Below the pieces are notes generated by a model. That model worked only from the letters and a program-made list of their open reading frames with translations. It did no database searches and was not told the DNA's origin. From the sequence record NC_041878.1: a stretch of DNA of 64,000 nt; one strand, 5' to 3'. The translations under genes were made by a program, and so were the position numbers. The stretch's first letter is position 1. Each line of letters starts with the position of its first letter. Shown here in pieces: positions 1,472 to 57,510 of the stretch.

Positions 1472-1500
1472 TGAAACGAAAATAAAACGTATGATATAAT
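1472..1500 (+). promoter_or_regulatory. Putative middle-class promoter TGAAAC-N14-TGATATAAT
   Basis: TGAAAC 1472-1477, 17 bp spacer, extended -10 ending at 1500; upstream of the DsbA-like gene and polB. Confidence 0.75.
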
Positions 1501-1504
1501 GTAG

Positions 1505-1536
1505 GCATCCTAGCGGAGAGTTAGGATGCTTTTTTT
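1505..1536 (+). terminator. Intrinsic terminator-like hairpin
   Basis: GCATCCTA...TAGGATGC followed by T7. Confidence 0.7.
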
Positions 1537-1553
1537 ATACATGGAGAAATGAA

Positions 1554-1856
1554 ATGGCTAAGAAGACTGAATCTAAAATTGAAGCACATGAGCTAAACGA
1601 CGCACAGCGTAAAAAACTTAAAGACGGCCTCAATTCCGCAGTAGTACAGCTAACCCACCTTGATACACTAAAAGAATCTTATGCAGATTTCATGGATACT
1701 CTAGCAGATGAACTAGGTCTTGACAAGGCTAAGTTGAAATCAGCAGCAATGCGTATCTATAAGCAAGACTTCTTTGATAAAGTTCGTGCACAAGACGAAG
1801 TAGAAACTATTCTAACAGTTTCCGGTAATCTTGCACAAATGGAAGATGATGAATAA
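1554..1856 (+). CDS. dsDNA-binding protein, T4 DsbA-like
   Basis: 100 aa; ELGLDKAKLKSAAMRIYKQD resembles T4 DsbA ELGVDGKMFNRLLALYHKD as recalled; GGAG RBS. Confidence 0.5.
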   Translation: MAKKTESKIEAHELNDAQRKKLKDGLNSAVVQLTHLDTLKESYADFMDTLADELGLDKAKLKSAAMRIYKQDFFDKVRAQDEVETILTVSGNLAQMEDDE

Positions 1857-1863
1857 TAAAAAT

Positions 1864-1889
1864 GCCCCAGGATTGGGGCGTTTTGTTTT
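1864..1889 (+). terminator. Terminator-like hairpin
   Basis: GCCCCA-ggat-TGGGGC then GTTTTGTTTT. Confidence 0.55.
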
Positions 1890-1915
1890 AAGTGCGTGTA
1901 ACATAAGGAGATAAG

Positions 1916-4900
1916 ATGTACGTAGATGGATATATGGATAGGAAAAAGACTGGTGAAGTTCTTCACGTAGCTGAACGTGTTAATGGTCAGCGTATACTGC
2001 GTGAAATTGAACCAGTATATGAGTACTATGTTGAATCTCCACGTGGTGAATACAAAACAATCAATGGAACATTAGCTGAGAAGTTTGAATTTACCCGTTT
2101 TTCAGAAATGAAAAAACAAATGGATGCATTGCCAAGTACTGCCAAGATCTATGAAGCAGATTGTAATGTAACCTTTAAAACATTAGCAAAACACTATATG
2201 GGGAAGCCATCTCCTGACCTCAATATTGTATTTTTCGATATTGAAACAGACTTTCACCCAAAATTTGGATATGCTCAACCAAGTGACCCTTTCAACCGTG
2301 TAACTGCAATTTCATTGTATCAAAGCTGGACAGGTAAAGACTATGTTCTTACTATGGCTCCTTCTGATATGGAAATTCATGAAGCACAAGACATTATTAA
2401 TCGTCTTAATGCTGAAACCAATGATCCAAACAGCGTAGTTATTCTATATACTGAAGAAACTGAAATGTTTCAGATGTTCTTTGAGCTAATTGAAGACGGT
2501 GATGTACTATCTGGATGGAACAGTGAATTCTTTGATATTCCATACATGGTTAATAGAACCAGAAAAATCTTTAACGAAGCAACGTTAGCTCGTTGGTGTC
2601 TATGGAATAAGAAACCAAATGCTCGTGAAGCAGATATGTTTGGTAAAACCATCGTAACCTATGATTTGGTCGGTCGTGTTCACTTAGACTATCTAGCATT
2701 GTACAAAAAACATGCTGGACAAGTTGAACAATCATATAAACTAGATTATATTGCTGAAAAAGTAACTGGTGAAAACAAAGTATCCTATGATGGTTCATTG
2801 GATAAATTGTATCGTGAAGATTATGAAACATTTCTACGATATTCTAAGCAGGATAGCATCCTACTAAAGAAAATCGATGAAAAAATGGACTTCATTAATC
2901 TACACAACCGACTAGCACATAAAGAATGTGTACTAATCAGTACTACTATGGGTTCTGTAGCACTAATCGACACTGCAATCATCAATCTTGCTCACCAGCG
3001 TGGGGAAGTCGTGTTCAATAAGCGTAAACTTGAAGAAGATGAAGTTGATTTCGAATATCAAGATTACGAAAGTGAATTTGATGATGAAGATGACGAAGAA
3101 ATGCAAGCTGGATCTAAAGCTGCTGGTGCATGGGTACAAGATCCAGTACTAGGATTGATTGATTTCTTAGGATGTGTTGACTTTAACTCACTATATCCTA
3201 CAGTTCTTCGTACATTAGGCATGAGTACTGAATGTATTCTAGGTCAATTACGTCAAACATATACTGATAAGTATTTGGCTGATAAAATTGAAGAACAACG
3301 TGTCAAATGGGCGAGAAATGGTGGTCGTGGTAAATTTGAACCTAAATGGACTGAAGCATGGCATGGTTTGTTCGCTAGTGTTGAATTCACGATGGTTCGT
3401 GAGAAATCACGAGATGTAATTACCGTTGATCTAGAAGATGGTACTACATTTGAGGCAACAGGTGCTGAATTATATGATATTATCTTCGGTGAAGATAGTA
3501 CTATTGTTCTAAGTGCGAACGGAACACTATTTGATAAGACTAAGTACGGTGTTATTCCAGAAATTCTTACAATGTGGTATTCTGAACGTAAAGCACAACA
3601 AAAAATGGTCATCGACTACAAACACTTGGCTACTGATGGTTGGGAAATTCCAGAAGAAGCAGTACAAGCAATCGAAAAAGAGTTACAATCTCTATCTTTC
3701 GGTACTGGAATTTATAAAACCAACTTACATGAAGATGATCCTATCTATCTAATGCGTTTAGCACTAGGTAAAAACGATTATACTGAAATGGCTAAGATTA
3801 TTGCATCTAATGGTATGCGTGTAGAAGATAATCACATCTTCGTTGCAGAAGCAGATAAGAAGTACTGTAAAACTCAATCTGCATTCTGGAAACAGAACCA
3901 ACAGATCCGTAAGATTCTTCTAAACTCACTATATGGTGCGTTGTTGAACAAAGGTTCACGTTTCTTTGATAAACGTCTAGGTCAATCAGTTACATTAACT
4001 GGCCGTAGTATGACTAAACACCTAGCAAGTAAGATTAATGAAGTTTGTACTGAAACTTACGATCATAGTGGTGGCGTAGTAGTATATGGTGATACTGACT
4101 CCGTATATTTCAGTGTTGCACACTACTATAAAGAGAATGACATTCCGTTTGAAATGTCAAAAGATGAAGTTGTTGAACTTTATCAAATGATTGGTGATAC
4201 TGTAGGTGCATCATTCCCTGAATTTATGGATACAACCTTTAACACTGGTATTGAAAAGGGTAAAATCGTTGGTGCGGATCTGGAAATGGTCGGTTCTCGT
4301 GGTCTATTCTTGAAGAAAAAGCGTTACGCTATTCTAAAATATTGGGAAGATGGGTTCCGTTTAGATGTGGATGGTAAACCCGGTAAGATCAAAGCTATGG
4401 GTCTTGAAATTAAACGCTCAGATACTCCAAAATACATCCAAAACTTCCTAGAAGAAACGTTGGTTGCATTACTAATTGGTGAAACTGAAGAAGAATTACG
4501 TGCTCGTGTACGTGCATTCAAGAAAGAGTTTAAAGATAAACCAAGTATTGAGAAAGGTTCACCAAAAACAGTTAAAAACTATACCAATAAGGAAAAAGAA
4601 TACCAAGATACAGGTAAATGTAGTGTAGGTCATGTACTTGCAGCTATACAATGGAACAAACTTCGTGATTTGAATGATGATAAATCAGTTCCAGAAGCTA
4701 CTGACGGTACTAAAGTGATTGTTTGTGACCTAAAACCTAATCCACTAGGTATTAAGAAAATTGGTTATCCAATTGACTGTGCTGATTATCTTCCAGAATG
4801 GTATCTAGAGCTTCCGTTCGATGATGATACAATGGAAAAAGCTGTACTAACCAAGAAATTAGGTAACATTTTCGGTATTCTAGATATGGATATTGGTATC

Positions 4901-4948
4901 GATGAGAAAAGTACCATTGAATTGAACACTGGTTTCTTCGAATGGTAA
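1916..4948 (+). CDS. gp43: DNA polymerase, family B (T4 gp43-like) with 3'-5' exonuclease domain
   Basis: Exo motifs FFDIETD, GWNSEFFD, YKLDYIA; polymerase motifs VDFNSLYP, KILLNSLYG, YGDTDS, KKRY. Confidence 0.97.
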   Translation: MYVDGYMDRKKTGEVLHVAERVNGQRILREIEPVYEYYVESPRGEYKTINGTLAEKFEFTRFSEMKKQMDALPSTAKIYEADCNVTFKTLAKHYMGKPSPDLNIVFFDIETDFHPKFGYAQPSDPFNRVTAISLYQSWTGKDYVLTMAPSDMEIHEAQDIINRLNAETNDPNSVVILYTEETEMFQMFFELIEDGDVLSGWNSEFFDIPYMVNRTRKIFNEATLARWCLWNKKPNAREADMFGKTIVTYDLVGRVHLDYLALYKKHAGQVEQSYKLDYIAEKVTGENKVSYDGSLDKLYREDYETFLRYSKQDSILLKKIDEKMDFINLHNRLAHKECVLISTTMGSVALIDTAIINLAHQRGEVVFNKRKLEEDEVDFEYQDYESEFDDEDDEEMQAGSKAAGAWVQDPVLGLIDFLGCVDFNSLYPTVLRTLGMSTECILGQLRQTYTDKYLADKIEEQRVKWARNGGRGKFEPKWTEAWHGLFASVEFTMVREKSRDVITVDLEDGTTFEATGAELYDIIFGEDSTIVLSANGTLFDKTKYGVIPEILTMWYSERKAQQKMVIDYKHLATDGWEIPEEAVQAIEKELQSLSFGTGIYKTNLHEDDPIYLMRLALGKNDYTEMAKIIASNGMRVEDNHIFVAEADKKYCKTQSAFWKQNQQIRKILLNSLYGALLNKGSRFFDKRLGQSVTLTGRSMTKHLASKINEVCTETYDHSGGVVVYGDTDSVYFSVAHYYKENDIPFEMSKDEVVELYQMIGDTVGASFPEFMDTTFNTGIEKGKIVGADLEMVGSRGLFLKKKRYAILKYWEDGFRLDVDGKPGKIKAMGLEIKRSDTPKYIQNFLEETLVALLIGETEEELRARVRAFKKEFKDKPSIEKGSPKTVKNYTNKEKEYQDTGKCSVGHVLAAIQWNKLRDLNDDKSVPEATDGTKVIVCDLKPNPLGIKKIGYPIDCADYLPEWYLELPFDDDTMEKAVLTKKLGNIFGILDMDIGIDEKSTIELNTGFFEW

Positions 4949-4963
4949 TAACAAGGACAAAAT

Positions 4964-5476
4964 ATGACTGACAATACAAATATTCACCAACGTATAGGTG
5001 AAGCAATTACTTCTGGTGGTGAATTCAACATCATCCGTGCAAATGATGCACACGAAGAACAAATTCTAACGGATGCTGGGTTTGTAAAAGTCGGTTCAAT
5101 GAAAGAAGGAGACAATATTGTCTCCTTATTCAAAGTTGAACTGAAAGAAAAGGAAGTAGTAAAAATTGTTGAAGTTCCGAATAAAAATAATTCGTGGCCT
5201 TTCAATGAACAATCACATCCATTCCGTAAACCTGATCCTGGTATTTGGTATCATAACAACCATTGGTTATATAACGATCCAAATAAACCAATGTACACAT
5301 ACTTAGGCACTAATACTGGTGATGCAGATTGGGTACAAAAAGATTTGAACAAAACTATATCTACCAGTACTGGAACCTTCAATGGAACTCTAAGTACACG
5401 GTTAGATGCTGCGTATGATCCTCTAAGTATTTTACAGGATTATACATTCAATACAGTACTAGATAAAAAGCAGTAA
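4964..5476 (+). CDS. Hypothetical protein
   Basis: 170 aa ORF, AGGA RBS, same strand and codon style as neighbours. Confidence 0.7.
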   Translation: MTDNTNIHQRIGEAITSGGEFNIIRANDAHEEQILTDAGFVKVGSMKEGDNIVSLFKVELKEKEVVKIVEVPNKNNSWPFNEQSHPFRKPDPGIWYHNNHWLYNDPNKPMYTYLGTNTGDADWVQKDLNKTISTSTGTFNGTLSTRLDAAYDPLSILQDYTFNTVLDKKQ

Positions 5477-5482
5477 AAATTA

Positions 5483-5511
5483 TGAAACGGGTACATTTTT
5501 TATGATATAAT
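5483..5511 (+). promoter_or_regulatory. Putative middle-class promoter inside an 11-bp inverted repeat
   Basis: TGAAAC 5483-5488, 17 bp spacer, TGATATAAT; arms ACGGGTACATT 5487-5497 and AATGTACCCGT 5509-5519. Confidence 0.75.
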
Positions 5512-5540
5512 GTACCCGTAAACAAATGGAGAAAGAACAA

Positions 5541-6272
5541 ATGGAATTACGTGACGTACTACGCGACCTAGTAACAACTACTGCTGGCATTGATTTTGAT
5601 TGTATCGCTATTTCTAGTGAAGATCGTGGTCAAGGTCAACGTGTTTATATGGAAGCCTATACATCTGACAAAAACTTAGTTATGCGAGCATATACTAAAG
5701 AAGACGTACCTGAAGTTGTTGGTCGTTTTGGTATCGGTAATCTTGGAATGCTTCAAGGTCTACTAAACCTAAACGTTTACAAAACTGACAGTACTAAAAT
5801 TAGTGTGAATGCGAAAGACGGTGTTGTTAAAAGCCTAACTTTCAATTCAGACGAAGCAAATACCAACTATCTAGTAGTTGCGGAAAAATATATTCCTAAC
5901 CAACCACGATTCACTGACCAACCATATGACGTACAGGTTACACCTAGTGCCGCAAAGGTCAATGAACTAAAAAGCTTCTCAGGCGTGTTTAAATCATTCT
6001 CTGCTTTAGTCACTCCCTTCACTGAGGACAACAGCTTATATTTCTACGTTGGTGAAAAGAATAAAAACAACCACACAGGTACTTTACTATTCGGTAAAAC
6101 TGAAGGTGAACTATCTAAAGGTTATGGTTATCCAATTGACCGTGTACTTCAAGCATTAAACCGCGTATCTAATGCTGAAACTAAGTCACTAGGGTTTACC
6201 AAAACTGGTATGTTAAACGTAACCGTAGATACTGGTGTTGCAGTTTATAGCATCTACGTAAGTGGTAGCTAA
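5541..6272 (+). CDS. Probable sliding clamp (gp45-like)
   Basis: About 243 aa, alternating alpha/beta pattern, FGIGNLGML like T4 gp45 fgIYDL motif; sits after polB with its own promoter; start moved to ATG 5541 (GGAG 5528-5531). Confidence 0.55.
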   Translation: MELRDVLRDLVTTTAGIDFDCIAISSEDRGQGQRVYMEAYTSDKNLVMRAYTKEDVPEVVGRFGIGNLGMLQGLLNLNVYKTDSTKISVNAKDGVVKSLTFNSDEANTNYLVVAEKYIPNQPRFTDQPYDVQVTPSAAKVNELKSFSGVFKSFSALVTPFTEDNSLYFYVGEKNKNNHTGTLLFGKTEGELSKGYGYPIDRVLQALNRVSNAETKSLGFTKTGMLNVTVDTGVAVYSIYVSGS

Positions 6273-6280
6273 TTTTTTAC

Positions 6281-6305
6281 AGGGAGCGTAATGCTCCCTC
6301 TTTTT
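6281..6305 (+). terminator. Intrinsic terminator
   Basis: AGGGAGC-gtaat-GCTCCCT then CTTTTT. Confidence 0.7.
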
Positions 6306-6318
6306 ATTTGGATTTAAA

Positions 6319-6933
6319 ATGAGTACACCTAGATTTATTGCTGATCTACATATGGGTCATAAAAATATCTGGAAATATCGTCCTGTGTTCGAAAGTACTT
6401 TACACAATGATCTATATTTTCAGTACATTCTGCAAGAAACTTGCAAAAAACGAGATACGATGTTCTTTCTAGGTGATGTTATTTTTGATGAAATCTATTT
6501 AGAATTCATTAAGAACTTACCTGGTACTAAAATTCTAATTCTCGGAAACCACTGTACAGAATATATCAGTACTTCAAAACTATGCGAAGTCTTTGATGAA
6601 GTTCATGGTCTTTTGAAGTATAAAGAATTCTGGCTTTCACACGCACCACTGCACCCTGATGAACTACGTGGCAAAAAGAATGTCCACGGACACGTTCACA
6701 GGGAATCAGTGAATGATTTAAACTACCTTAATGTTTCTGTAGACAGTTCTTTCATGAACTTTTTCCCTAGAACCTTACATGAAATTCGTCAAGGTTTTGA
6801 GACAGTAAATAACGAACAAAAGATTTTTGCTGGTGTACCAAACGAAGATGCGTTAAGTGTCATCGAAAGTAATCCAATTGCAAAAGAAGCTTATTACAAA
6901 GCACTAGAAGAATCAAGAAAATTTACTGTTTAA
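6319..6933 (+). CDS. Calcineurin-like metallophosphoesterase
   Basis: Motifs ADLHMGH, FLGD, LGNH, SHAP, HGHVH. Confidence 0.85.
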   Translation: MSTPRFIADLHMGHKNIWKYRPVFESTLHNDLYFQYILQETCKKRDTMFFLGDVIFDEIYLEFIKNLPGTKILILGNHCTEYISTSKLCEVFDEVHGLLKYKEFWLSHAPLHPDELRGKKNVHGHVHRESVNDLNYLNVSVDSSFMNFFPRTLHEIRQGFETVNNEQKIFAGVPNEDALSVIESNPIAKEAYYKALEESRKFTV

Positions 6934-6944
6934 AAGGATTTAAA

Positions 6945-7154
6945 ATGCCACTATATACATATCGTTGTACTAAAGAAGAATGCAATCATAGCATGGACAA
7001 AATCGTAAAATACGATGATAGAGAAACAATCAAGTACGATTGTACAGAATGTGGTACTGAACAGAGTATGCAATTTGAAGCCTTTACTCCTGGTGATAAA
7101 GGCTTTAATGTAAAATACAAAGGAAATTGGTTTAATACCACTGGCAGATACTAA
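6945..7154 (+). CDS. FmdB-like zinc-ribbon protein
   Basis: MPLYTYRC..C...CTECG pattern, 69 aa, AGGA RBS. Confidence 0.75.
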   Translation: MPLYTYRCTKEECNHSMDKIVKYDDRETIKYDCTECGTEQSMQFEAFTPGDKGFNVKYKGNWFNTTGRY

Positions 7155-7171
7155 TTTGAATGGAGTCAAAT

Positions 7172-7459
7172 ATGAGTTTACAAGCTATTAATGATTATGT
7201 TATTGTTGAACTAATCGACAATACAAAACAAAGTTCAGCAGGTCTTATTTTGACTAGCGTTGAACCACCTTGTACTGGTACTGTAATTACAGTTGGACCA
7301 GGACGAGTTCTAAATGATGGTTCTCGTGAAGAACATAACATTCAAGTAGGGGATGTGATCGTTTTTGGTAAATCTTCACTAAATATGCCACTAGAAGATG
7401 ATGATAAAACCTTCTATGTTATGAAAACTAGTGATATATTTGGAAAGAAAAATGGCTAA
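7172..7459 (+). CDS. groES: GroES-like co-chaperonin (bacterial type)
   Basis: LQAINDYVIVE...AGLIL...GTVITVGPGRVLNDG...QVGDVIVFGK matches the GroES fold; start at ATG 7172 (GGAG 7162). Confidence 0.9.
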   Translation: MSLQAINDYVIVELIDNTKQSSAGLILTSVEPPCTGTVITVGPGRVLNDGSREEHNIQVGDVIVFGKSSLNMPLEDDDKTFYVMKTSDIFGKKNG

Positions 7460-8171
7460 GAAAATTTTACCATTCTGGTTGTACCCTTCACATTGGGGTT
7501 TAAAAGGGCAAGCTAAAGAACTTGCAGAAATCGATTTTTATTATGATGGTTTAGAAGCTGCACTGAAACGTGCAGATATTGTTTGTCTAACAAAGATTGA
7601 CAAAGAGAAAACCAAAAATGAATTACGCTATACTCATGGAGAAATCAATGAATTTGAGTTCGAAATGGCTAAAGTACAAATCGATTTCGATAATGCGGTT
7701 ATTTCAAAAGTAACATATGAACTTAATCGCTTAGATGTGCAATTCAAATTTGGTCAAATTGATGAGCGTGAATATGATTCTGCTAAAGTTGAAATGATTA
7801 AAGATGAAGATAAAAAATACATTGCGGCATTGGAATTCGCACTGAAGTACAATGAAATTACGCAAAATGAATATGATAAGGAACTGGCTACATTTAACCG
7901 TGAGCCGTGGTTCTTATTTGACGTGGATTTCGATGAAGAAAATAATGACTTAATTATGTCTTTTGACTATAACGAGTACTTCTGGAAGAAATTACGTGAA
8001 GAAGGTCATCCTGGTAACGATGAGCATGAAATTATCGACAACTTTATTAAAGATTGGGGTCGGAAGTTAGCTACCGAAGACTACAGCGGTGACTATGACA
8101 CAAAGTTAACAAGCATAAACGACGAAAGGAATCAACAGACTGGTTCTGGTGATTTTAAGATTTATGAGTAA
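7452..8171 (+). CDS. Hypothetical protein with SHOCT-like 19-aa repeats
   Basis: Repeats HGEINEFEF, NAVISKVTY, FGQIDEREY, YNEITQNEY. Confidence 0.65.
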   Translation: MAKKILPFWLYPSHWGLKGQAKELAEIDFYYDGLEAALKRADIVCLTKIDKEKTKNELRYTHGEINEFEFEMAKVQIDFDNAVISKVTYELNRLDVQFKFGQIDEREYDSAKVEMIKDEDKKYIAALEFALKYNEITQNEYDKELATFNREPWFLFDVDFDEENNDLIMSFDYNEYFWKKLREEGHPGNDEHEIIDNFIKDWGRKLATEDYSGDYDTKLTSINDERNQQTGSGDFKIYE

Positions 8172-8172
8172 T

Positions 8173-9586: not shown

Positions 9587-9615
9587 TGAAACTGCACATA
9601 AAAATGTGGTATAAT
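9587..9615 (+). promoter_or_regulatory. Putative middle-class promoter
   Basis: TGAAAC-17bp-TATAAT with TGG extension, upstream of the RNase H gene. Confidence 0.75.
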
Positions 9616-14871: not shown

Positions 14872-14900
14872 TGAAACGTTGTACTATTTTGTGGTATAAT
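14872..14900 (+). promoter_or_regulatory. Putative middle-class promoter (distal ssb promoter)
   Basis: TGAAAC-17bp-TATAAT with TGG extension. Confidence 0.75.
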
Positions 14901-14958
14901 GTAGAAGAATTTGAGGCAACTCGAATAAGTCAGTCAAGACTATAAAATGACAAAAATG

Positions 14959-14987
14959 TGAAACGCTACAAGAAATTGTGGTATAAT
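14959..14987 (+). promoter_or_regulatory. Putative middle-class promoter (proximal ssb promoter)
   Basis: TGAAAC-17bp-TATAAT with TGG extension. Confidence 0.75.
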
Positions 14988-18684: not shown

Positions 18685-20169
18685 ATGAGTGGAACTTGTA
18701 AGTTAATACTTCAGGACGAAGTAAACTGTAAATTTGAGGGGCTTGCCCCTAATATTCGTCAAGAAATGATTCGTAAGGTTTCATATACTTTACCATATGC
18801 ACGATATACACCAGCAGGTCGTATGGGTCGGTGGGATGGTAAAGTAAACTTTATGAACATCGGTGGTAGTACTTACTATCATATGTTAGATCAGTTGCTA
18901 CCGATTCTTGAAAAACATGATGTGATGATTGAAATTGAAGATCAACGCATTCAACACAATTTTGAATTCGAACCAATTGATGAGAACATTTTCGATTACG
19001 TTGAATTCCCACCTGGTCACCATATGGAAGGAAAGAAAATTGTCCTTCGTGAACACCAAGTGAATGCAGTAAACACTTGTCTACAGAATCCACATGGGTT
19101 ACTATTGGCAAGTACTTCATCAGGTAAAACACTAATTACTGCTGCAATGTCTAAATCCGTTGAGAAATACGGTCGAAGTATTGTTATTGTACCGAACAAA
19201 GACCTTGTTCAGCAAACGTACAACGATTATGCAATGGTTGGATTAGATGCAGGTGTGTTTTATGGTGAGAAGAAAGAATTAAATCACCAACATACAATTA
19301 CAACCTGGCAATCATTAAACTCTTTGTGGAAAAAGACAAAAAAAGGTGAACTAGAACTAACTGAACAAGATGTTCATGATTTCATTAATGGTGTTATTGC
19401 AGTTATTGTCGATGAAGCACATACAAGTGCAGCAGAAGCATTACATGCAGTACTAGGTCAAGTAATGAAAAACATTCCTTTGCGTTGGGGGCTAACTGGT
19501 ACAATTCCAAAAGATCCTGTACTTGCAGCAAAGATTAAATGTAATGTTGGTGAAGTAATCTATACTATTACAGCTAAAGAATTGCAGGATAAAAAGATTC
19601 TCAGTACTTGTAATGTGAACTGTATTAGATTAAAAAGTTCTCTAAAATTTGCAAACTATCAGGAAGAACTAAAGTATCTTGTAACTGATAGAGATAGAAT
19701 GAAGTACGTAGCAACATTAATTGCTGCTATAGCTGAAAGTGGAAACACGCTAGTACTAGTTGATAGATTAGAAGCTGGTGAACTACTTTGTGAATACTTA
19801 GGTATACCAAAGTCAGAATTCGTTCGTGGTGATACTAAGAAGAAAGACCGTGAAGCTTCATATGGAGAAATCCGATGGGCTGATAACAAAATCCTAATTG
19901 CTACCTATGGTGTTGCAAGTACTGGTATTAGTATTAGTCGTTTATATAACGTTGTACTAATTGAACCAGGCAAGAGTTTTGTACGTACTATTCAAAGTAT
20001 TGGTCGTGGTTTACGTCGAGCAGAAGATAAAGACCACGTAGAGATTTATGACATTTCAGGTTCCAACAAGTATAGTGCTAAGCATATGCGAGAACGTATT
20101 GCGTACTATAATGAGGTACAATATCCATACGTCGAGATGATTGTGGATGATTGGCAAAATATGGAATGA
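18685..20169 (+). CDS. uvsW: SF2 DNA helicase UvsW
   Basis: STSSGKT, DEAH, GLTGT, QSIGRGLR. Confidence 0.92.
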   Translation: MSGTCKLILQDEVNCKFEGLAPNIRQEMIRKVSYTLPYARYTPAGRMGRWDGKVNFMNIGGSTYYHMLDQLLPILEKHDVMIEIEDQRIQHNFEFEPIDENIFDYVEFPPGHHMEGKKIVLREHQVNAVNTCLQNPHGLLLASTSSGKTLITAAMSKSVEKYGRSIVIVPNKDLVQQTYNDYAMVGLDAGVFYGEKKELNHQHTITTWQSLNSLWKKTKKGELELTEQDVHDFINGVIAVIVDEAHTSAAEALHAVLGQVMKNIPLRWGLTGTIPKDPVLAAKIKCNVGEVIYTITAKELQDKKILSTCNVNCIRLKSSLKFANYQEELKYLVTDRDRMKYVATLIAAIAESGNTLVLVDRLEAGELLCEYLGIPKSEFVRGDTKKKDREASYGEIRWADNKILIATYGVASTGISISRLYNVVLIEPGKSFVRTIQSIGRGLRRAEDKDHVEIYDISGSNKYSAKHMRERIAYYNEVQYPYVEMIVDDWQNME

Positions 20170-20190
20170 GTTAAATTTTTGTGATATAAT
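20162..20190 (+). promoter_or_regulatory. Putative middle-class promoter, variant TGGAAT box
   Basis: TGGAAT-17bp-TATAAT with TGA extension. Confidence 0.6.
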
Positions 20191-25051: not shown

Positions 25052-25080
25052 TGGAATGCATTAAAAAAATGTGGTATAAT
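25052..25080 (+). promoter_or_regulatory. Putative middle-class promoter, variant TGGAAT box
   Basis: TGGAAT-17bp-TATAAT with TGG extension, upstream of primase. Confidence 0.65.
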
Positions 25081-31192: not shown

Positions 31193-31528
31193 ATGAGGTT
31201 TAGTCAAATAACCGAAGATGCACCAGGTAAAGACATTCGGAACATGATTAGTACTATTGCACTATCTTTAATTGCTACTGGCAGGGAACAAGTTAGTGTT
31301 CAATCATTAATTAATGAAATTAAAAAACGTACTAATATCGATGTTCCGTATAATGTTATGATGGACATTTTAAACGAGTTACCATTTGTTCAGGATGCTA
31401 ATTCTGACATTGTAACGCTTCAAGGAAGTGACACTACTCCAAGTGGGGATAATGCTGAATCTTCTGAAGAACAAGTTACAGATATGGCAACTAAAGCAGC
31501 AGCAAATAATTTAAAACAAGATATTTGA
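31193..31528 (+). CDS. Hypothetical protein with capsid-targeting-like N-terminus
   Basis: Begins MRFSQITE; 111 aa. Confidence 0.55.
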   Translation: MRFSQITEDAPGKDIRNMISTIALSLIATGREQVSVQSLINEIKKRTNIDVPYNVMMDILNELPFVQDANSDIVTLQGSDTTPSGDNAESSEEQVTDMATKAAANNLKQDI

Positions 31529-31554
31529 AACAATAAAAAAACATGTGCTATAAT
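31526..31554 (+). promoter_or_regulatory. Putative middle-class promoter
   Basis: TGAAAC-17bp-TATAAT with TGC extension. Confidence 0.75.
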
Positions 31555-38014: not shown

Positions 38015-38043
38015 TGAAACGCCAAAATAAAATATGGTATAAT
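38015..38043 (+). promoter_or_regulatory. Putative middle-class promoter
   Basis: TGAAAC-17bp-TATAAT with TGG extension. Confidence 0.75.
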
Positions 38044-40885: not shown

Positions 40886-40914
40886 TGAAACAGCTTGGAA
40901 TATTATGATATAAT
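40886..40914 (+). promoter_or_regulatory. Putative middle-class promoter
   Basis: TGAAAC-17bp-TATAAT with TGA extension. Confidence 0.75.
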
Positions 40915-44433: not shown

Positions 44434-44461
44434 TTGACAGCTATAAATTAAATGTTATAAT
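44434..44461 (+). promoter_or_regulatory. Consensus sigma70 (putative early) promoter
   Basis: TTGACA-16bp-TATAAT with TGT extension, upstream of the IF-3 gene. Confidence 0.8.
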
Positions 44462-50351: not shown

Positions 50352-50717
50352 ATGATAAGCACAATATTTTTTCTACTAATTTTATTTCAAATTAAACATT
50401 TCGTTTGTGATTACCCACTTCAAGGGCGTTACATGTTAGGCAAATTCAAAGAAGAAGGATGGGAACTTCCTTTAGCTGCACATGCTGGTGTTCACTTTAT
50501 TGGAACATTCTTGATTGCAGTATTCTTCGGATTCTGGCTTGCTATTGGTGTAGCACTACTTGACGCAGTTATTCACTTCGTTGTAGATAAAGTAAAAGTT
50601 GAAGCTTCTCGTTCTACTAATCATAGTGAAGCGAAATTCTGGTGGTACTTAGGTTTAGACCAAATGGCACACCACGTTACACATTACGCAATTATTGCAC
50701 TATTAGTTCTACTATAA
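50352..50717 (+). CDS. DUF3307-like membrane protein
   Basis: KHFVCDYPLQ, HAGVH, HFVVD, DQMAHH His-rich TM motifs. Confidence 0.75.
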   Translation: MISTIFFLLILFQIKHFVCDYPLQGRYMLGKFKEEGWELPLAAHAGVHFIGTFLIAVFFGFWLAIGVALLDAVIHFVVDKVKVEASRSTNHSEAKFWWYLGLDQMAHHVTHYAIIALLVLL

Positions 50718-50721
50718 ATAC

Positions 50722-50752
50722 TAACGACGCTCCAGAGCGTCGTTATTTTTTT
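50722..50752 (+). terminator. Intrinsic terminator
   Basis: TAACGACGCTC-ca-GAGCGTCGTTA then T7. Confidence 0.75.
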
Positions 50753-50780
50753 GAAACAAAGAAACAAATTATGCTATAAT
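50752..50780 (+). promoter_or_regulatory. Putative middle-class promoter
   Basis: TGAAAC-17bp-TATAAT with TGC extension, upstream of the topoisomerase genes. Confidence 0.75.
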
Positions 50781-50812
50781 GTATTGGCTAAGAAACAATA
50801 AAGGGAATTAAA

Positions 50813-52786
50813 ATGGCAAAGGAAAAGAAAAGTTCTGTTCTCGCTGAACATGGTGTTCAACAACTAACTGAATATCAACATGCTCGTATCCGTACTGAAA
50901 TGTATTTGGGTTCGAAATCAGAACATGAACAACCAGTTCTTCTATTTGGAGAAGATGGTTACAACGTGCAAAACTTAGGTTGGGTTCCTGCTCTATTAAC
51001 ATCTTTCCGCGAAATCGTGGATAACTCATTAGACGAATTCGTAAAAGCTGGCACTCGTGATCCAGTACTACGTGTTATGTACAATGAAGATGAACTTGAA
51101 TTCGAAATTAGCGACAACGGTCGTGGTATTCCAATTGACTACGTACCAGAAACACAGAAACATTTGTGTACTATGGTATTGACCGAAATGAAAACAGGTC
51201 GTAACTTTAATGACAGCGAACGTAATAACGTTGTTGGTATGAACGGTCTAGGCGGTTCAGTAGTTATGATCGTAAGCGAAAAAGCTGAATTAGAAATTCA
51301 CAGAACAGGTAAACCATACAAAACAGATAAAGCTAACGCTGAATATGATGGTATGTATAAATTCACTCAGAAGTTCACTGAAGGAACTACCATGTTCCCT
51401 GAACTCGGAATTGAAGAACCAAGTATTCGTAAAGTTAAATCTGATAAAACTGGTACAACTGTACGCTTCAAGATTAGTAAGTCTGTGTTCCATACACATA
51501 CTCTACCATTCGAACTAGTGTATAGCATCCTAAAAGAGATTGCCGCTGCTAACCCAACGTACAAAATCTTTTTGAATGACCAACGTATCACCGTGAATAA
51601 GAAAGGTTTATTCGCAACATCTAAAAACACAATGACTCTTAAAGTAGAAGATAGTGAGATCGGACTTGACAGTACTTTCTATATCGTACCTAATGTAGTC
51701 AGTGGGTTAAACAAAAACATTCACATGCAAGGTCTTGTGAATAACGCACCATCTCTTGAAGGTGGTACACACTTAGATACTTTCCAGCAAAAGTTTGCAC
51801 TTGGTGTTATCAGTGCATTGGAACGTATACCTAAGAACCGTAAACGCAATCTAAAACCTAACCGTTCTGATGTTGAAGAAGGTTTGTTGATTTATAACGT
51901 CACTAAGATGAATACACCAACATTCAACTCTCAAATCAAAACAAAGTTAACTAATGAGAATGTCATTAAACCAGTACAGAATGCACTAAGTGAAGAATTC
52001 TTTAACGACCTAGTTAAGAAAAATACTGAGTGGGTTGAAGAAATCTATGCTCGTTGTGCTGAACGTACTAACAAGAAAGATGCAGACGAAGATCGTAAAA
52101 TGGCAAAACGCCTCCTAAAAGGTAAAGTAGCTAAACTACGTGATGCAAACGGTTCAAACCGTATGGACTGTATTCTTCTAATTGCAGAAGGTGATTCTGC
52201 TGTAAGTTCAATGACTGCTGCTCGTAACTCTGCTATTCATGGTATTCTACCGCTTCGTGGTAAAATTATGAACGTGAATGGTAAGGAAAAAACTAAAGAT
52301 CTAATGGCATCTGATGCACTACACGATATTATGGCTTCGCTAAATATTGTTCCTGGTGAGAAAGCTATCCGTGAAAATATGAACTACGGTAAACTTTATA
52401 TCTGTGCTGACGAAGATGAGGATGGAAAAAACATCGGTGCTCTAGTTGTAAACTTCCTATACAAATTCTGGCCTGAGCTATTTGAAGACAAAGACAATCC
52501 GTTTGTTTATGTATTCAAAACTCCATTTATTATTTTGGAGAAAGGTAAAGAGTCTAAGTACTTCTATGGTCATAACGTCCATGAGTACAATCCAGAAGAA
52601 TGGAAAGGATGGAAAGCAACTCGTGCGAAAGGTCTTGGTACTCTAGAAGTTTCAAACTTCCGTGATGCACTATCCAATGGCGTTGCCGTTGCGATTGTTG
52701 ATGATGGGAATCTAAGGGAAACTTTAGACCTAATCTTTAACAAAGAACGTGCAGATGATCGTAAAGAGTGGACACGAGAAGACTAA
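50813..52786 (+). CDS. Type II topoisomerase ATPase/TOPRIM subunit (GyrB-like; gp39+gp60 equivalent)
   Basis: EIVDNSLDE, DNGRGIP, GMNGLGG, AEGDSA, PLRGK, DEDEDG, KGLG. Confidence 0.95.
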   Translation: MAKEKKSSVLAEHGVQQLTEYQHARIRTEMYLGSKSEHEQPVLLFGEDGYNVQNLGWVPALLTSFREIVDNSLDEFVKAGTRDPVLRVMYNEDELEFEISDNGRGIPIDYVPETQKHLCTMVLTEMKTGRNFNDSERNNVVGMNGLGGSVVMIVSEKAELEIHRTGKPYKTDKANAEYDGMYKFTQKFTEGTTMFPELGIEEPSIRKVKSDKTGTTVRFKISKSVFHTHTLPFELVYSILKEIAAANPTYKIFLNDQRITVNKKGLFATSKNTMTLKVEDSEIGLDSTFYIVPNVVSGLNKNIHMQGLVNNAPSLEGGTHLDTFQQKFALGVISALERIPKNRKRNLKPNRSDVEEGLLIYNVTKMNTPTFNSQIKTKLTNENVIKPVQNALSEEFFNDLVKKNTEWVEEIYARCAERTNKKDADEDRKMAKRLLKGKVAKLRDANGSNRMDCILLIAEGDSAVSSMTAARNSAIHGILPLRGKIMNVNGKEKTKDLMASDALHDIMASLNIVPGEKAIRENMNYGKLYICADEDEDGKNIGALVVNFLYKFWPELFEDKDNPFVYVFKTPFIILEKGKESKYFYGHNVHEYNPEEWKGWKATRAKGLGTLEVSNFRDALSNGVAVAIVDDGNLRETLDLIFNKERADDRKEWTRED

Positions 52787-52836
52787 TCATTAGTGGGGTA
52801 CAGGAAGTACCCCGAATTAACAAAGAGGCAAACGGA

Positions 52837-54243
52837 ATGCGTAAAACTAAACAAGCAAAAGAAATTGTTCCAAATGAACTAACACTACTGGACTATGAAA
52901 GTTCAGACTATATTAACCAATCATCTCTAGAGTACGCTTTAAGTACTTTTGACCGTTCTCTACCTGGGATAGATGGGTTTAAAAACTCTCAGCGTAAAGC
53001 TATCTTCACTCTAAGTAAAATTAGTGGAGAAATCAAAACTGTATCTTGTGCAGGTCGTATGATTAGCGATGGCATTTATCTTCATGGTGATGCATCAGCT
53101 AGTGGTACTCTACAAAACCTAGCAAGTCCAGTTGTGAATAACTACCCATTAATCGGTAAACGTGGTGGTTTTGGTACTCAAGTTAACCCAACACCAGCAA
53201 GTCCACGTTATACATATGTGAAGAAAACCAAAATCACTGAAGCATTAGTACTTCGTGATATTGATGTTGTTCCTATGCAAGAAAACTATGATGGTACTAC
53301 ATTAGAACCTAAGTTCTTCCTACCATTAATTCCTCTTGCTCTACTTGGTGTAGATGGTACAGCAACAGCGTATAAGAGCTTCATCTTCCCATATCGTATG
53401 AATGATATTATTGATAATACTATTCGTGCAATTGAAGGAAAGCCGCTTGAACCAATGATTCCGTACTATGCAAGTTATGGTGCGAATGATTACGTTGAAG
53501 ATCGTGGTGAAGGTAAGTACACATTTTTTGGTAAAGCTGAAGTTATTGATGCAAGTACTGTTCGAATTACTGGTCTAGCTCCACGTATGAAGTTAGAGAA
53601 GTTCGTAGAGGACTTGATTGAAATGGAAGATTCTGGTAAAATTCGTAGTTACGAAGATAATAGTTCTGGTAAAGTAGATATTACTATAAAACTACCACGT
53701 GGTCTTTCAGGTTCATGGTCAGAAATGGATGTACTTGAGTATTTTTCCATTTCAACAAAATTGGCACATACCCTTAATGTTTTAGGTGAAAACGGAAAAG
53801 TTAAAAGTTACAATGATGTTCTAGAGATTATCCAGGACTTCGTTCAGTTCCGATTCAAATACTACATCAAGCGTTATGAAAAACTTCTAGCAGATGCAGA
53901 CGCAGAAGTACGTTATAAGATTCTAGTCAAAGAATGCTTTGACAATGATATGATGGCTAAAATCAAATCATTCCAGAATCGTGCAGAAGTGGTTGATTTC
54001 GTCACAGCACTAAATGAAGAAATCGAAGCATCAGAAGATAATATTCAAAATATTGTGAATTTCCCAAGCTATCGTTGGACTCAAGAAAACTATGATAAAG
54101 TACTTCAAGATATTGAAGATGCTCTAGCTAAGATGGATGAGTATAATGATCTACTTGCAAATCACGACAAAATCTGGAATATCTATAAGCAAGAACTTAT
54201 AGAACTACGGGCAATGAATTTTGTTCCACCAGAAGATGACTAA
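52837..54243 (+). CDS. Type II topoisomerase breakage-reunion subunit (GyrA/gp52-like)
   Basis: DGFKNSQRK, YLHGDAS, ASPRYT with the active-site Tyr; start moved to ATG 52837 (GAGG 52825). Confidence 0.93.
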   Translation: MRKTKQAKEIVPNELTLLDYESSDYINQSSLEYALSTFDRSLPGIDGFKNSQRKAIFTLSKISGEIKTVSCAGRMISDGIYLHGDASASGTLQNLASPVVNNYPLIGKRGGFGTQVNPTPASPRYTYVKKTKITEALVLRDIDVVPMQENYDGTTLEPKFFLPLIPLALLGVDGTATAYKSFIFPYRMNDIIDNTIRAIEGKPLEPMIPYYASYGANDYVEDRGEGKYTFFGKAEVIDASTVRITGLAPRMKLEKFVEDLIEMEDSGKIRSYEDNSSGKVDITIKLPRGLSGSWSEMDVLEYFSISTKLAHTLNVLGENGKVKSYNDVLEIIQDFVQFRFKYYIKRYEKLLADADAEVRYKILVKECFDNDMMAKIKSFQNRAEVVDFVTALNEEIEASEDNIQNIVNFPSYRWTQENYDKVLQDIEDALAKMDEYNDLLANHDKIWNIYKQELIELRAMNFVPPEDD

Positions 54244-54248
54244 TTTAT

Positions 54249-54276
54249 AAGGACGCATAAAGCGTCCTTTATTTTT
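54249..54276 (+). terminator. Intrinsic terminator
   Basis: AAGGACGC-ataaa-GCGTCCTT then T-rich. Confidence 0.75.
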
Positions 54277-54290
54277 AATTAAGAACATAT

Positions 54291-54298
54291 CATAAATA
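54291..54298 (+). promoter_or_regulatory. Putative late promoter CATAAATA
   Basis: About 33 nt upstream of ATG 54331. Confidence 0.55.
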
Positions 54299-54330
54299 CG
54301 TCAAAGCTTTTTATGTTTTGGAGATTAGAT

Positions 54331-56700
54331 ATGGCAAACTTCGAACCCCAATGGGATTTGATCGCTGACACCAATACAATTCAAGAAGGACAAACCACGT
54401 ACTTTAGACTACGTTTGAAAAAAAGTCAATCCACTTCGCAAAATAATCAATATAATCTTGCAAGTACTGATCATTTAGAATTCAAATTCAATATTGTCAG
54501 TTCAGGGGAAACTTATGAAGAACGAGATTTTAATGTTTCGATTGGTGAAAGTACTTCTGCCTTAGTTCCTATTGGTAAAGCAGGAACTGGATCATCAACA
54601 ATTGCAGGTTCACATGTAGTTAAAATTAATAGAAAGGCATTCGACCTTTCAAGTGCTACATACATCGACGCATTTTTGTTTAAAATAGAATGTCCACAAG
54701 ATGGAATTTGGGATGGCCCAGAATCATTAACGTTCAATATCGATAGCATAAATGTTATTACGATTATTGATAATCAAGTTGCGAACACAGTTCCTAGTGG
54801 CGTTCTTGGTACAACTACACAGATTTTAAATTACAACACAACAAACGAAGTTTGGCTAACGCCTGGCTTAACTACACATGGCGATAACCTATATACAATA
54901 GGTGGAATTGGTTATGGTGCGGAAAGCCGTTTATTTGTTCAGGCATTCGGAAAAAGTCAAACTATTTCAGGCGTGACAAACGTATTCATGCCAGCGTATG
55001 AAATACTTACAATGAGTACTGGTGAAATGCCATCTAAGCACATCACTGGTTCTGGAACTATTATTGTACCAGATTTGACAAATGGATTACAAGAAGAAAT
55101 CCCTTTACTCATCCGTGATATTAATGGCAACATGGTTAATAGTGGTTTGAAATTTAATGGGAACAATGGTCAAATAGTACAAACTATGCTTTATGACTCT
55201 GACCCAATAGATGCATATATTAAAGTAAGAATTGTGTCTGTAAAAAGATACTACCTTTCACAAGAAGATGCATATTTTGTTGGTAAACGCTTCCGTGCGT
55301 ATCAGACATGGATTGCACCTGATAATGCTAGTACTATGCATGAAGCACCAACACCTAAACATTTATATCAATTAAAAGATACAACCGTCTATCCTTATGT
55401 GGTTGGGGAAACTGTATTCGAAGGTACTAATTACATTGAATACAATCCTGACAGATGGTATGATTTAGGTTTATACAACGAATCATTAGGCAATGGACTA
55501 ATTAATAATACACGCATTTTCCGTATTGTTGTTAATGATAATACTGGAAGTAATATTTCGTTCGAAACAGATTCAAATTTAGGTGAAATTCACGTTGGTG
55601 AATATTTTGGACATACAGTATATCCAAAGATTGTTGCAAATGGTTCAGACCTTATCACATACGAAATTAATCACAGTACTTCTCCAAATGACATTCGCAA
55701 GTACGGGTTAGATATGAGTGCAGATGGTACAATGATTGGCACAGCATATGCGAGAAGTGCAGATTTCACAGCGAATGATGATATACCCTTACAGTTCGAT
55801 GTAGTTGCTACTGGTAAAAATGGTAGAAGTTTAACTCAAAGATTCAAGATAAGAATCATTCGTGGTTTAGGTCAGAACTTCATATCTGCTGATATTCAAC
55901 CTTCATTGACATTGGAACGTTCATGGTTTAGTATGATTGCAACGAATGCTTTTAGTTCAGCTAGATATTATAGACCTACAGATCCTAAATATGGAGTTCG
56001 TAAAGTACCGAGATTGTTATTGAAAGAAAACTTTGTTGATCCTTCAATGAACTGGCCTGGTTTAAAACAGACTGTAACTAATCTTAGAAATGGTATTGTA
56101 GATACTGTTGGTGGTGCTCCTACTCCAGATGGTTCATTCCGTTTAGTACTAGGTAACTATAAAGTTCGTTCTGCTCTTGACAATTTAGGTAATGTACTGT
56201 ATGATGTACTTTATAGAGAAGTTCATCCAGAAGGAACGCAAGTAGATTTAAGTTTAAACCCTCTCGTTTATACTGATTACTCAAGTTCAATCATATCTGA
56301 AATCTATGGTTTACGTCAGAATATTTTCAATGTTGTGGGTGAAGATACTATTAACCTTCTTACAGACCCAACCGATTTAAACAATCGTGGTGTTGTTGTT
56401 GATGCAATCAATGGTCTTTCAGAAGAAATGATAGATACTGTTCCGCGTTTCATGAATCATCCATATATTGAAGATAATATCAAAGCTATGTATTTCCCAT
56501 GTATTGTTGTTGCATATTTACAACCAGGTCAAGGTGAAGCATTCTTTAATACACTAATTCAAAATAATGAACACGGTACATTATTGAACTATGAGTTTGA
56601 AGTTTCTGGAGTTGAATTTAGTTACTTTACTCAGGATACAACTCATTACGTAAAAGAAAATTTCACGGCATCACTTAAAGTGCCAAATCTATTTCAATAG
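54331..56700 (+). CDS. Large probable virion (baseplate/tail) protein
   Basis: About 789 aa beta-rich, Ig/cadherin-like segments, late promoter, GGAG RBS. Confidence 0.55.
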   Translation: MANFEPQWDLIADTNTIQEGQTTYFRLRLKKSQSTSQNNQYNLASTDHLEFKFNIVSSGETYEERDFNVSIGESTSALVPIGKAGTGSSTIAGSHVVKINRKAFDLSSATYIDAFLFKIECPQDGIWDGPESLTFNIDSINVITIIDNQVANTVPSGVLGTTTQILNYNTTNEVWLTPGLTTHGDNLYTIGGIGYGAESRLFVQAFGKSQTISGVTNVFMPAYEILTMSTGEMPSKHITGSGTIIVPDLTNGLQEEIPLLIRDINGNMVNSGLKFNGNNGQIVQTMLYDSDPIDAYIKVRIVSVKRYYLSQEDAYFVGKRFRAYQTWIAPDNASTMHEAPTPKHLYQLKDTTVYPYVVGETVFEGTNYIEYNPDRWYDLGLYNESLGNGLINNTRIFRIVVNDNTGSNISFETDSNLGEIHVGEYFGHTVYPKIVANGSDLITYEINHSTSPNDIRKYGLDMSADGTMIGTAYARSADFTANDDIPLQFDVVATGKNGRSLTQRFKIRIIRGLGQNFISADIQPSLTLERSWFSMIATNAFSSARYYRPTDPKYGVRKVPRLLLKENFVDPSMNWPGLKQTVTNLRNGIVDTVGGAPTPDGSFRLVLGNYKVRSALDNLGNVLYDVLYREVHPEGTQVDLSLNPLVYTDYSSSIISEIYGLRQNIFNVVGEDTINLLTDPTDLNNRGVVVDAINGLSEEMIDTVPRFMNHPYIEDNIKAMYFPCIVVAYLQPGQGEAFFNTLIQNNEHGTLLNYEFEVSGVEFSYFTQDTTHYVKENFTASLKVPNLFQ

Positions 56701-56708
56701 GAGGATTT

Positions 56709-57014
56709 ATGTTCCATCCGTTTTTTGATCCTTCATCTTTAAGTAATCAAGAACTTCATGACAAAATCAATGAAGTTTCTATGCGTATTGCTTCTGCTAG
56801 AGCAGCAGGAATCCAATATGAAGTTATACAATCTATGTTTACTGTAATTCAATCTTGTGAAGAAGAATTACGTACTCGCCAAGCTAAAGTAGATTTGGAT
56901 GAAGTACAGAAAGAAAACAATCATTGTGTATTTGATTCAGATAGTTATATTAACACTTCAGATGAAAAGAAAAATGAAAGTACAAGGAAACAGAACTATA
57001 AGCGAGCATGGTGA
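56709..57014 (+). CDS. Hypothetical coiled-coil protein
   Basis: 101 aa, GGAGGA RBS. Confidence 0.65.
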   Translation: MFHPFFDPSSLSNQELHDKINEVSMRIASARAAGIQYEVIQSMFTVIQSCEEELRTRQAKVDLDEVQKENNHCVFDSDSYINTSDEKKNESTRKQNYKRAW

Positions 57015-57492
57015 TGTTCGCTTAGATTTAAACGCCGTGGTTTACGCAATAAACTGCGGTGCAGACATAAGATACATACAACTTAATGAACAAGATGAAG
57101 CTGAACGACTAAAGTTCAACGACAATTGTAAGAAATTCGGATTAGAAGAACGTATGTTGGATTATACAATCAATCATGACCAGAATCATGAGTTATGGCG
57201 TTATGATCCAGCATATGATAAAATTAATCTCGAAGACTATTTTCTTAACTTATGCAGTACAGATGAGCAACGCGAACGTGTACTATATGAGCTAAGTCTA
57301 TATGAAAGCTACAACATGACTAAACTACTACGTTGTATGATCTGGCTAGTAGACTACCTCGAAGAACATAATATTTTTTGGGGCTTAGGTCGTGGAAGTT
57401 CAGTAAGCAGCTATTGTTTATATTTGATTGGATTACATCTAGTAGATTCCATAAAATATGAACTAGATGTGAACGAATTTTTGAAATGGTAA
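56974..57492 (+). CDS. DnaE (Pol III alpha)-like fragment, N-terminal half of a split minimal polymerase
   Basis: ERVLYEL...DYLEEHNIFWGLGRGSSVSSYCLYLIGLHLVDSIKYELDVNEFLK matches DnaE RL..EL...GxGRGSxxGSLVAY.LGIT.VDP..Y.L.FERFL; start moved to ATG 56974. Confidence 0.8.
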   Translation: MKVQGNRTISEHGDVRLDLNAVVYAINCGADIRYIQLNEQDEAERLKFNDNCKKFGLEERMLDYTINHDQNHELWRYDPAYDKINLEDYFLNLCSTDEQRERVLYELSLYESYNMTKLLRCMIWLVDYLEEHNIFWGLGRGSSVSSYCLYLIGLHLVDSIKYELDVNEFLKW

Positions 57493-57510
57493 AAAAAATT
57501 ATGGTATAAT
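57482..57510 (+). promoter_or_regulatory. Putative middle-class promoter, variant TGAAAT box
   Basis: TGAAAT-17bp-TATAAT with TGG extension. Confidence 0.65.

Follow-up and report, generated by a model that had tools for sequence, protein, structure and literature searches.

A TGAAAC(G)/extended -10 promoter class of the Rak2-like phage vB_PcaM_CBB and its probable reading by the phage sigma factor CBB_513

Introduction

Which protein reads a family of promoter-like sites whose -10 element looks like that of the host and whose -35 element does not? The question is raised by a stretch of 64,000 nucleotides (nt) from sequence record NC_041878.1 (hereafter the window, meaning the whole stretch), in which an extended -10 (TGnTATAAT) recurs together with a hexamer, most often TGAAAC, placed 17 base pairs (bp) upstream of TATAAT. 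The window is 100% identical to bases 186001-250000 of Pectobacterium phage vB_PcaM_CBB (KU574722 / NC_041878; hereafter CBB), a 378-kb Rak2-like jumbo myovirus of the genus Mimasvirus. We suggest that these sites are middle promoters and that their reader is probably a sigma factor encoded by the phage itself, CBB_513, acting on the host core polymerase.

The promoter motif is already known for CBB. Buttimer et al. 2017 described "CBB divergent RpoD-like promoters" combining a classic -10 with a TGAAACG -35 word, found 18 of them in CBB (11 before open reading frames (ORFs) 258-329), and noted that DNA-synthesis genes and a gp55-like gene lie downstream (PMC5259590). According to the passage of that paper citing Abbasifar et al. 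2014, the motif has also been seen in GAP32 (PMC5259590). The reader of the class is not named there, CBB_513 and the regulator CBB_511 being mentioned only as likely host-takeover genes (PMC5259590). In the literature on Rak2-like enterobacterial phages we found no transcriptome and no in vitro promoter work; the words promoter and sigma do not occur in the RaK2 genome paper, and the literature, including reviews up to 2026, offers only the general statement that such sigmas "likely" direct the host polymerase to phage promoters. Since the motif is already published, the present analysis adds little as a discovery; what it adds to the published list are 37 strict sites in place of 18, a tandem pair before ssb, sites before tRNA genes or ORF-free stretches, and a comparative case for CBB_513 as the reader.

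Results

The sites of the window

The window was searched with the pattern TGRAAY-N14-TGNTATAAT, and the chance level was taken from shuffles. Twelve matches were obtained, all of them on the + strand, against a shuffle mean of 0.01; they are exactly the twelve sites that a preliminary description of the window had listed, and their hexamers (TGAAAC at nine, TGGAAT at two, TGAAAT at one), as well as the GTA that directly follows six of the twelve, are also as described there. The box is present at 12 of the 13 occurrences of TGNTATAAT in the window, and the thirteenth (44453) is part of a TTGACA promoter. Annotated starts lie 14-86 nt downstream of the sites, excepting the distal promoter of ssb (173 nt). 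Ten of the twelve appear with identical coordinates, as the same 29-nt sites, in Table S6 of PMC5259590 (names beginning with Porf below), only the ssb pair being missing from it. The sites, as predicted from the sequence, are the following, together with two sites outside the class given for contrast.

1472..1500, + strand, putative middle-class promoter with a TGAAACG box, TGATATAAT; precedes gp262 (100 amino acids (aa)) and DNA polymerase gp263; predicted transcription start ~1507, 54 nt to the start codon; Porf_262
5483..5511, + strand, putative middle-class promoter; precedes gp265 (hypothetical) and a phosphoesterase; Porf_265
9587..9615, + strand, putative middle-class promoter; precedes RNase H-type 5'-3' exonuclease gp272; Porf_272
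14872..14900, + strand, putative distal promoter of a tandem pair; precedes ssb gp277; absent from Table S6
14959..14987, + strand, putative proximal promoter of the same pair; precedes ssb gp277; absent from Table S6
20162..20190, + strand, putative middle-class promoter, TGGAATG variant; precedes gp282 and the genes after it; Porf_282
25052..25080, + strand, putative middle-class promoter, TGGAATG variant; precedes primase gp290 and primase-helicase gp291; Porf_290
31526..31554, + strand, putative middle-class promoter; precedes exonuclease gp300; Porf_300
38015..38043, + strand, putative middle-class promoter; precedes gp307-gp309, one of which is a nucleotide pyrophosphohydrolase; Porf_307
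40886..40914, + strand, putative middle-class promoter; precedes the operon gp312 / DHFR / RNase H / Dda helicase; Porf_312
50752..50780, + strand, putative middle-class promoter; precedes topoisomerase II subunits gp324 and gp325; terminator-like hairpin immediately 5'; Porf_324
57482..57510, + strand, putative middle-class promoter, TGAAATG variant; precedes gp329 to clamp loader gp332; box overlapping the stop codon of the upstream ORF; Porf_329
44434..44461, + strand, contrast, outside the class: host-type TTGACA-N16-TATAAT; precedes the IF-3-like gene gp318
62294..62325, + strand, contrast, outside the class: host-type TTGACA promoter-like site, TTGACA-N17-TACTAT

The assignments of the downstream genes made in the preliminary description largely agree with this list (polB operon, rnh, ssb twice, primase, exonuclease, the DHFR/RNase H/Dda operon, topoisomerase II and the clamp-loader operon). 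Only the "clamp" could not be verified: gp265 (window 5541-6272), annotated as hypothetical, has no Pfam or PDB family match. The two TTGACA promoters reported at 44434 and 62294 are both present, and the ATAAATA element reported before structural genes was found before virion genes.

Two observations concern the surroundings of individual sites. The 100-aa ORF between the first promoter and polB (gp262, window 1554-1856) weakly matches PHROG 639, "transcriptional regulator" (4.5e-7), and also, weakly and without PDB support, SarX-type winged-helix proteins; gp262 may thus act as a small transcription factor expressed from a middle promoter. At window 50713-50752, three elements are crowded within 70 bp 5' of the topoisomerase genes: a late-type TATAAATA, a strong hairpin with a T-run that resembles a terminator, and the middle promoter. 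The pairing of terminator and promoter was rejected as a trait of the class, an upstream hairpin with a T-run occurring at only 6 of 37 sites of the genome.

The class in the complete genome

In the complete CBB genome the strict pattern occurs 37 times, always on the coding strand, and TGnTATAAT is found at every one of these sites (37/37), as it is at the twelve of the window. When spacings from 10 to 24 bp between box and TATAAT were tried, 17 bp was found in 38 cases and every other spacing in 0-2. With sites chosen by box and spacing alone, TG not being required (n=39), TG was nevertheless present at -15/-14 in 38, T at -17 in 36, and T-R-T-G-n-TATAAT in 38. For comparison, sites of the TTGAC[AT] type have TG in about 6 of 25 and spacers of 16-18 bp. 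The seventh base after the -10 is a purine at 36 of the 37 strict sites. The -35 word is about as informative as the -10, including its C6 and G7, and the base preceding TGAAAC is T at just 9/37.

Some further sites of the genome precede tRNA genes or ORF-free stretches. Six putative middle-class promoters stand before tRNA genes (Ser, Leu, Arg, Asn, Pro and Met), and seven, at genome positions 32288, 94230, 174388, 258095, 301521, 301710 and 336280 (all outside the window), have no downstream ORF; these seven are candidate markers of non-coding RNA genes.

The sigma factor of CBB and other candidate readers

A six-frame search of the complete genome for sigma-70 region 2 revealed a single protein that carries it.

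Genome 331103-332095 (outside the window): CBB_513, 330 aa, the single sigma-70-family gene of CBB

CBB_513 matches Sigma70_r2 (28.3 bits), Sigma70_r3 (27.6 bits) and RpoD_Cterm (5e-29), it can be aligned to residues 179-412 of Thermus SigA from region 2 through region 4.2, and it scores far higher on RpoD/RpoS models than on the model of the extracytoplasmic function (ECF) superfamily. Its region 4.2 helix reads SKATLSR where sigma-70 has TRERIRQ (SKATLSRRY against TRERIRQIE in Thermus SigA). An AlphaFold single-sequence model of the protein had a mean predicted local distance difference test score (pLDDT) of 35 and was not used as evidence.

The operon of CBB_513 is headed by TTGACA-N17-TATAAT at genome position 330479. 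No middle-class site was found within 3 kb 5' of the sigma gene in CBB, BF, PBECO4, Munch or RaK2, the upstream sites there being of the TTGACA type. The gp55-like late-sigma gene, on the other hand, stands behind a middle-class promoter in CBB, BF, PBECO4 and Munch, and also in GAP32.

Other readers were considered and rejected. CBB_511 (HTH_37), which is encoded beside the sigma gene, cannot be the common reader, because homologues of it are lacking in the other relatives and also in BF, whose box is the same. A reading of the box by RpoH (CTTGAAA) or by an ECF sigma was discarded on the -10 and on the family of the phage sigma.

Promoter word and recognition helix in related phages

Complete records of PBECO4, RaK2, BF, Munch and Vibrio phage 2.275.O were compared with that of CBB. 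Sigma orthologues are present in all Rak2-like phages and evolve fast: their identity drops to 33-45% in comparisons in which the DNA polymerase retains 73-75%. The -35 words are nearly mutually exclusive between lineages, as the following counts (coding/other strand) indicate.

TGRAAC at 17 bp: CBB 35/0; BF 36/0; PBECO4 6/1; Munch 2/0; RaK2 1/0
TGRGAC: CBB 0/0; BF 0/0; PBECO4 18/0; Munch 30/0; RaK2 1/0
YTGAAC: CBB 3/5; BF 1/2; PBECO4 1/1; Munch 1/0; RaK2 21/1

The word of the Vibrio phage is TGWTAC (9/3), with TGTTATAAT. Orthologous genes keep their promoter at almost equal distance from the start codon in every lineage while the -35 word is swapped; this holds for the gp55-like gene, the ORF before polB, gp265, rnh, ssb, gp282, the primase, the exonuclease, topoisomerase II and the clamp-loader operon. 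Even the tandem pair of ssb (~87 bp apart; window 14872-14987) is kept in CBB, GAP32, BF, PBECO4, Ecwhy_1, Munch and RaK2. The TTGACA-type (26-39 sites) and GTACTTGC-type (6-22 sites) classes, in contrast, occur with an unchanged word in all five enterobacterial phages.

The variation is not limited to the -35 word. At -13, the usual base is G in CBB (26/39) and BF (30/41) but A in Munch (26/30), PBECO4 (18/24) and RaK2 (17/21), while the Vibrio phage has T (8/10); the spacer of Munch is 18 bp instead of 17, with an almost invariant TGTGATATAAT. The recognition helices of the corresponding sigmas are the following.

SKATLSRRY: CBB, GAP32 and BF (identical); box TGRAAC in CBB and BF
SRTSLHRCY: Munch; box TGRGAC
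ARSSLHRKY: Ecwhy_1
SRSSIHRKY: PBECO4; box TGRGAC
VRGTLHYKF: RaK2; box YTGAAC
TKTTIQRFE: Vibrio phage; box TGWTAC

The helix of the TGRGAC lineages is of the type SR[ST]S[LI]HR. In a forward test, the helices of EJP2 and A4 were read first, G at position 4 of the box was predicted, and the genomes were then checked. The prediction held, EJP2 (helix NRCTIHR) using TGAGAY and A4 (SRSSVHR) using TGGGAC/TGAGAC, in both cases with TGTGATATAAT-type -10s. Sphingomonas phage PAU, whose sigma resembles CBB_513 only weakly and locally (E = 5e-5 over region 2) but has the helix SKPTISR, carries at least 20 TGAAAC-N17-TATAAT sites on one strand only, against 0 in the control; PAU is an independent lineage that agrees with the match between helix and box. 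On these comparisons, promoter specificity (box word, -13 base and spacing) seems to track the sigma recognition helix across lineages, a relationship that is correlative.

Two further observations were made in the relatives. The site at 57482-57510 still has TGAAATGG in PBECO4, EJP2 and A4, although the class word of these phages is TGRGAC; its box overlaps the stop codon of the upstream ORF (56899-57492), and this coding constraint may have frozen it across lineages. The distant relative Vibrio phage 2.275.O encodes two sigma-70-family proteins (214748-215512 and 73726-74520 of its record).

Discussion

A possible three-step sigma cascade

No reader of the TTGACA-type early promoters is plausible other than the host polymerase with its own sigma-70, and it is with these promoters that the proposed circuit would begin: the host holoenzyme would read them, including the one that heads the CBB_513 operon, and the CBB_513 so produced would take the place of the host sigma on the core polymerase. 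The divergent region 4.2 helix of the phage sigma would then read TGAAAC(G) at -35, and its regions 2 and 3 the obligatory T-R-T-G-n-TATAAT across the fixed 17-bp spacer, with transcription beginning at the purine 7 nt past the -10. In this way tRNAs and the genes of the replication, recombination and nucleotide groups would be turned on by the class, and with them the gp55-like late-sigma gene, whose product might in turn read the ATAAATA late promoters, thus completing a cascade of three steps. We call the class "middle" by circuit logic, because genes of replication and recombination, as well as the gene of the gp55-like late sigma, lie behind it. To this extent the view of the preliminary description, that of a phage-specific middle-promoter class unlike the MotA box, agrees with our results (TGAAAC(G) at -35, a 17-bp spacer, and replication/recombination and gp55-like genes downstream).

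The comparison of the related phages is what points to the reader. If host sigma-70 is shared, a reader that is not the same from phage to phage must be phage-encoded. Since the -13 base and the spacing differ as well, it probably contacts both promoter elements, as a sigma does. A phage-encoded sigma is also the simpler reader, because the box lies at the canonical -35 position, its spacing is a rigid 17 bp, and it changes together with the recognition helix.

Several points weigh against this assignment. Both helix and box follow the phylogeny of the phages, so that the co-variation has a basis of only about five lineages plus PAU, and RaK2 departs from a simple one-residue rule: at the 588 position it has the H of the TGRGAC group, and yet it uses YTGAAC. 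Region 4 of CBB_513 is divergent, falls under the Pfam threshold and carries an 8-residue insertion (IDGKGKFV) before the recognition helix; region 2.4 is also divergent (TT for the WW pair, and M for Q437 in the PBECO4 lineage), yet TATAAT is unchanged. The argument for a phage-encoded reader has, moreover, a background premise, namely that sigma-70 is essentially identical across enterobacterial hosts. Finally, the -10 is a perfect host sigma-70 extended -10. Host sigma-70 can initiate at promoters of this kind even when they lack a -35 element, so that the host sigma may account for part or all of the reading of these sites.

The strongest form of this last objection is that host sigma-70 alone reads the sites as strong extended -10 promoters, TGAAAC being a tolerated or auxiliary -35 or an UP-like variant and the class not being temporally distinct. 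It is true that the best arrangement for host sigma-70 is TGnTATAAT and a purine start 7 nt further on, that extended -10 promoters need no -35, and that the RaK2 word, (T/C)TGAACAA, is close to TTGACA. At 17 bp, however, TGAAAC and TTGACA agree at only 2 of 6 positions, and the 18-bp reading TTGAAA is usually unavailable, because the base before the box is so seldom T. The spacing is rigid where the TTGACA class varies between 16 and 18 bp; the word is as informative as the -10 also at C6 and G7, which sigma-70 does not read; and it is swapped throughout the regulon between phages of enterobacterial hosts, whereas the TTGACA and GTACTTGC classes stay constant. All this makes host reading alone quite improbable in our opinion. 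Still harder to credit, indeed scarcely conceivable, is that the sites are a dispersed repeat rather than promoters (for example, signals for replication, packaging or recombination). Repeated and strictly oriented they are, but they have the bipartite -35/-10 geometry and the purine at +7, their conservation is confined to the two hexamer regions, and they are followed within 14-86 nt by a start codon or a tRNA gene, their positions being orthologous in all relatives.

There is also the idea of sigma appropriation or class II-type activation, in which host sigma-70 would read the extended -10 and an unrecognised phage factor, MotA-like and with or without an AsiA-like remodeller, would read TGAAAC. 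The preliminary description took the class to imply a new activator or sigma-appropriation system of this sort, and here our results diverge from it: PF09114 (MotA_activ), PF09158 (MotCF) and PF09010 (AsiA) were unmatched at E <= 10 in the six-frame search of the complete CBB genome, the phage encodes a sigma-70-family protein, and the box changes together with the helix of that protein. The sole DNA-binding candidate beside the sigma gene, CBB_511, is absent from BF despite the same box. T4 middle promoters do pair a sigma-70 -10 with a replaced -35, and the perfect sigma-70 extended -10 of the CBB sites would suit such an arrangement; the CBB box, however, occupies the canonical -35 at one rigid spacing, against the 11-13 bp that separate the MotA box from the -10. 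A lineage-specific box would fit any phage-encoded reader, sigma or other, but the -13 base, which host sigma would read in that model, also changes with the phage lineage, and a conserved early phage sigma would be left without a promoter class. Most CBB early genes are of unknown function, so that an unseen activator is possible; on balance we regard such a factor as unlikely. The more specific version, in which a sigma appropriation independent of MotA/AsiA is conserved and fast-evolving across Rak2-like jumbo phages and the phage sigma serves another purpose, seems distinctly doubtful. Thus, a sigma cascade with CBB_513 as the middle sigma is the reading that we favour.

An observation apart concerns a fourth, very stereotyped promoter-like class, AGTACTTGCAA plus (GAGTACT)WTATAAT, which is dense in the terminal repeat. 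Eighteen such sites were found in CBB (genome 4964-16186 and the terminal-repeat copy 360887-372109, outside the window) and 22 in PBECO4, in a cluster of ~20 kb, the word being identical in both lineages. From its sequence features, this looks like a host-read immediate-early class.

If CBB_513 is indeed the middle sigma, the TGAAAC class receives a concrete reader. The relatives of CBB, sister phages whose hosts are closely related, would then have rewritten the -35 word of a whole regulon along with a few residues of the sigma helix; from this natural series a small specificity code for region 4 of sigma could be drawn, and orthogonal sigma/promoter pairs for enterobacteria could be obtained. 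The annotation of transcription units would also be improved for Rak2-like phages used in therapy and biocontrol.

Comparison with known systems

Promoters of sigma-W, an ECF sigma of Bacillus subtilis, have the form TGAAAC-N16-CGTA, and they share with the CBB class the word TGAAAC at -35 and a rigid spacing. The identity of the word is a resemblance only. An ECF-type promoter combines a GAAC-type -35 and a CGT-type -10 with a two-domain sigma devoid of region 3, and the CBB class does not fit this description: its -10 is TATAAT with TG, and CBB_513 has region 3 and is best described as RpoD/RpoS-like. Compared with extended -10 promoters read by the host, the CBB sites have the TG one base upstream of a good -10, but their -35 word, about as informative as the -10 and exchanged across the regulon between lineages, does not look free of a sequence requirement.

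The likeness to the middle promoters of T4 goes further. In both phages, a sigma-70-like -10, often TGn-extended, is combined with an upstream word that is not that of sigma-70, and the promoters precede replication genes and, in CBB by circuit logic, come between the early and the late ones in the cascade. The T4 element, however, is the MotA box, (a/t)(a/t)(a/t)TGCTTtA, centred near -30 and 11-13 bp upstream of the -10, whereas CBB has TGAAAC(G) at -35 with a fixed 17-bp spacer; in addition, CBB has no match to MotA or AsiA and possesses a sigma-70 homologue, which T4 lacks. The CBB class is not a member of the T4 MotA/AsiA system, because three of the four features that define the latter (the MotA box, the MotA gene and the AsiA gene) are missing and only the sigma-70-type -10 is shared.

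PAU offers a closer parallel in the promoter itself, with TGAAAC 17 bp from TATAAT in at least 20 copies on one strand and a helix, SKPTISR, near the SKATLSR of CBB. The two sigmas are otherwise barely alignable, and PAU has TAG instead of TG before the -10. Furthermore, the PAU sigma (gene 1) carries the annotation of a capsid-internal protein; in the published table of CBB no virion flag is attached to CBB_513.

Three features of a phage-sigma cascade are, on sequence evidence, present in CBB: a sigma-70-family protein is encoded, a host-type early promoter precedes its gene, and promoter specificity tracks its helix. The promoters of gp28, the middle sigma of Bacillus phage SPO1, and of phiEco32 gp36 differ from those of the host in both elements. 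CBB_513, unlike those two sigmas, is RpoD/RpoS-like with region 3, and in its class the host-like extended -10 is kept and only the -35 word is private. What the three systems would have in common is an early phage protein of the sigma-70 family that redirects the host core polymerase to a private, bipartite middle class including the gene of the next regulator. The switch of SPO1 to phage sigmas is restated in the abstract of PMC13401047. We infer that the CBB class would work like these other phage sigma cascades, of which SPO1 gp28 is the textbook case.

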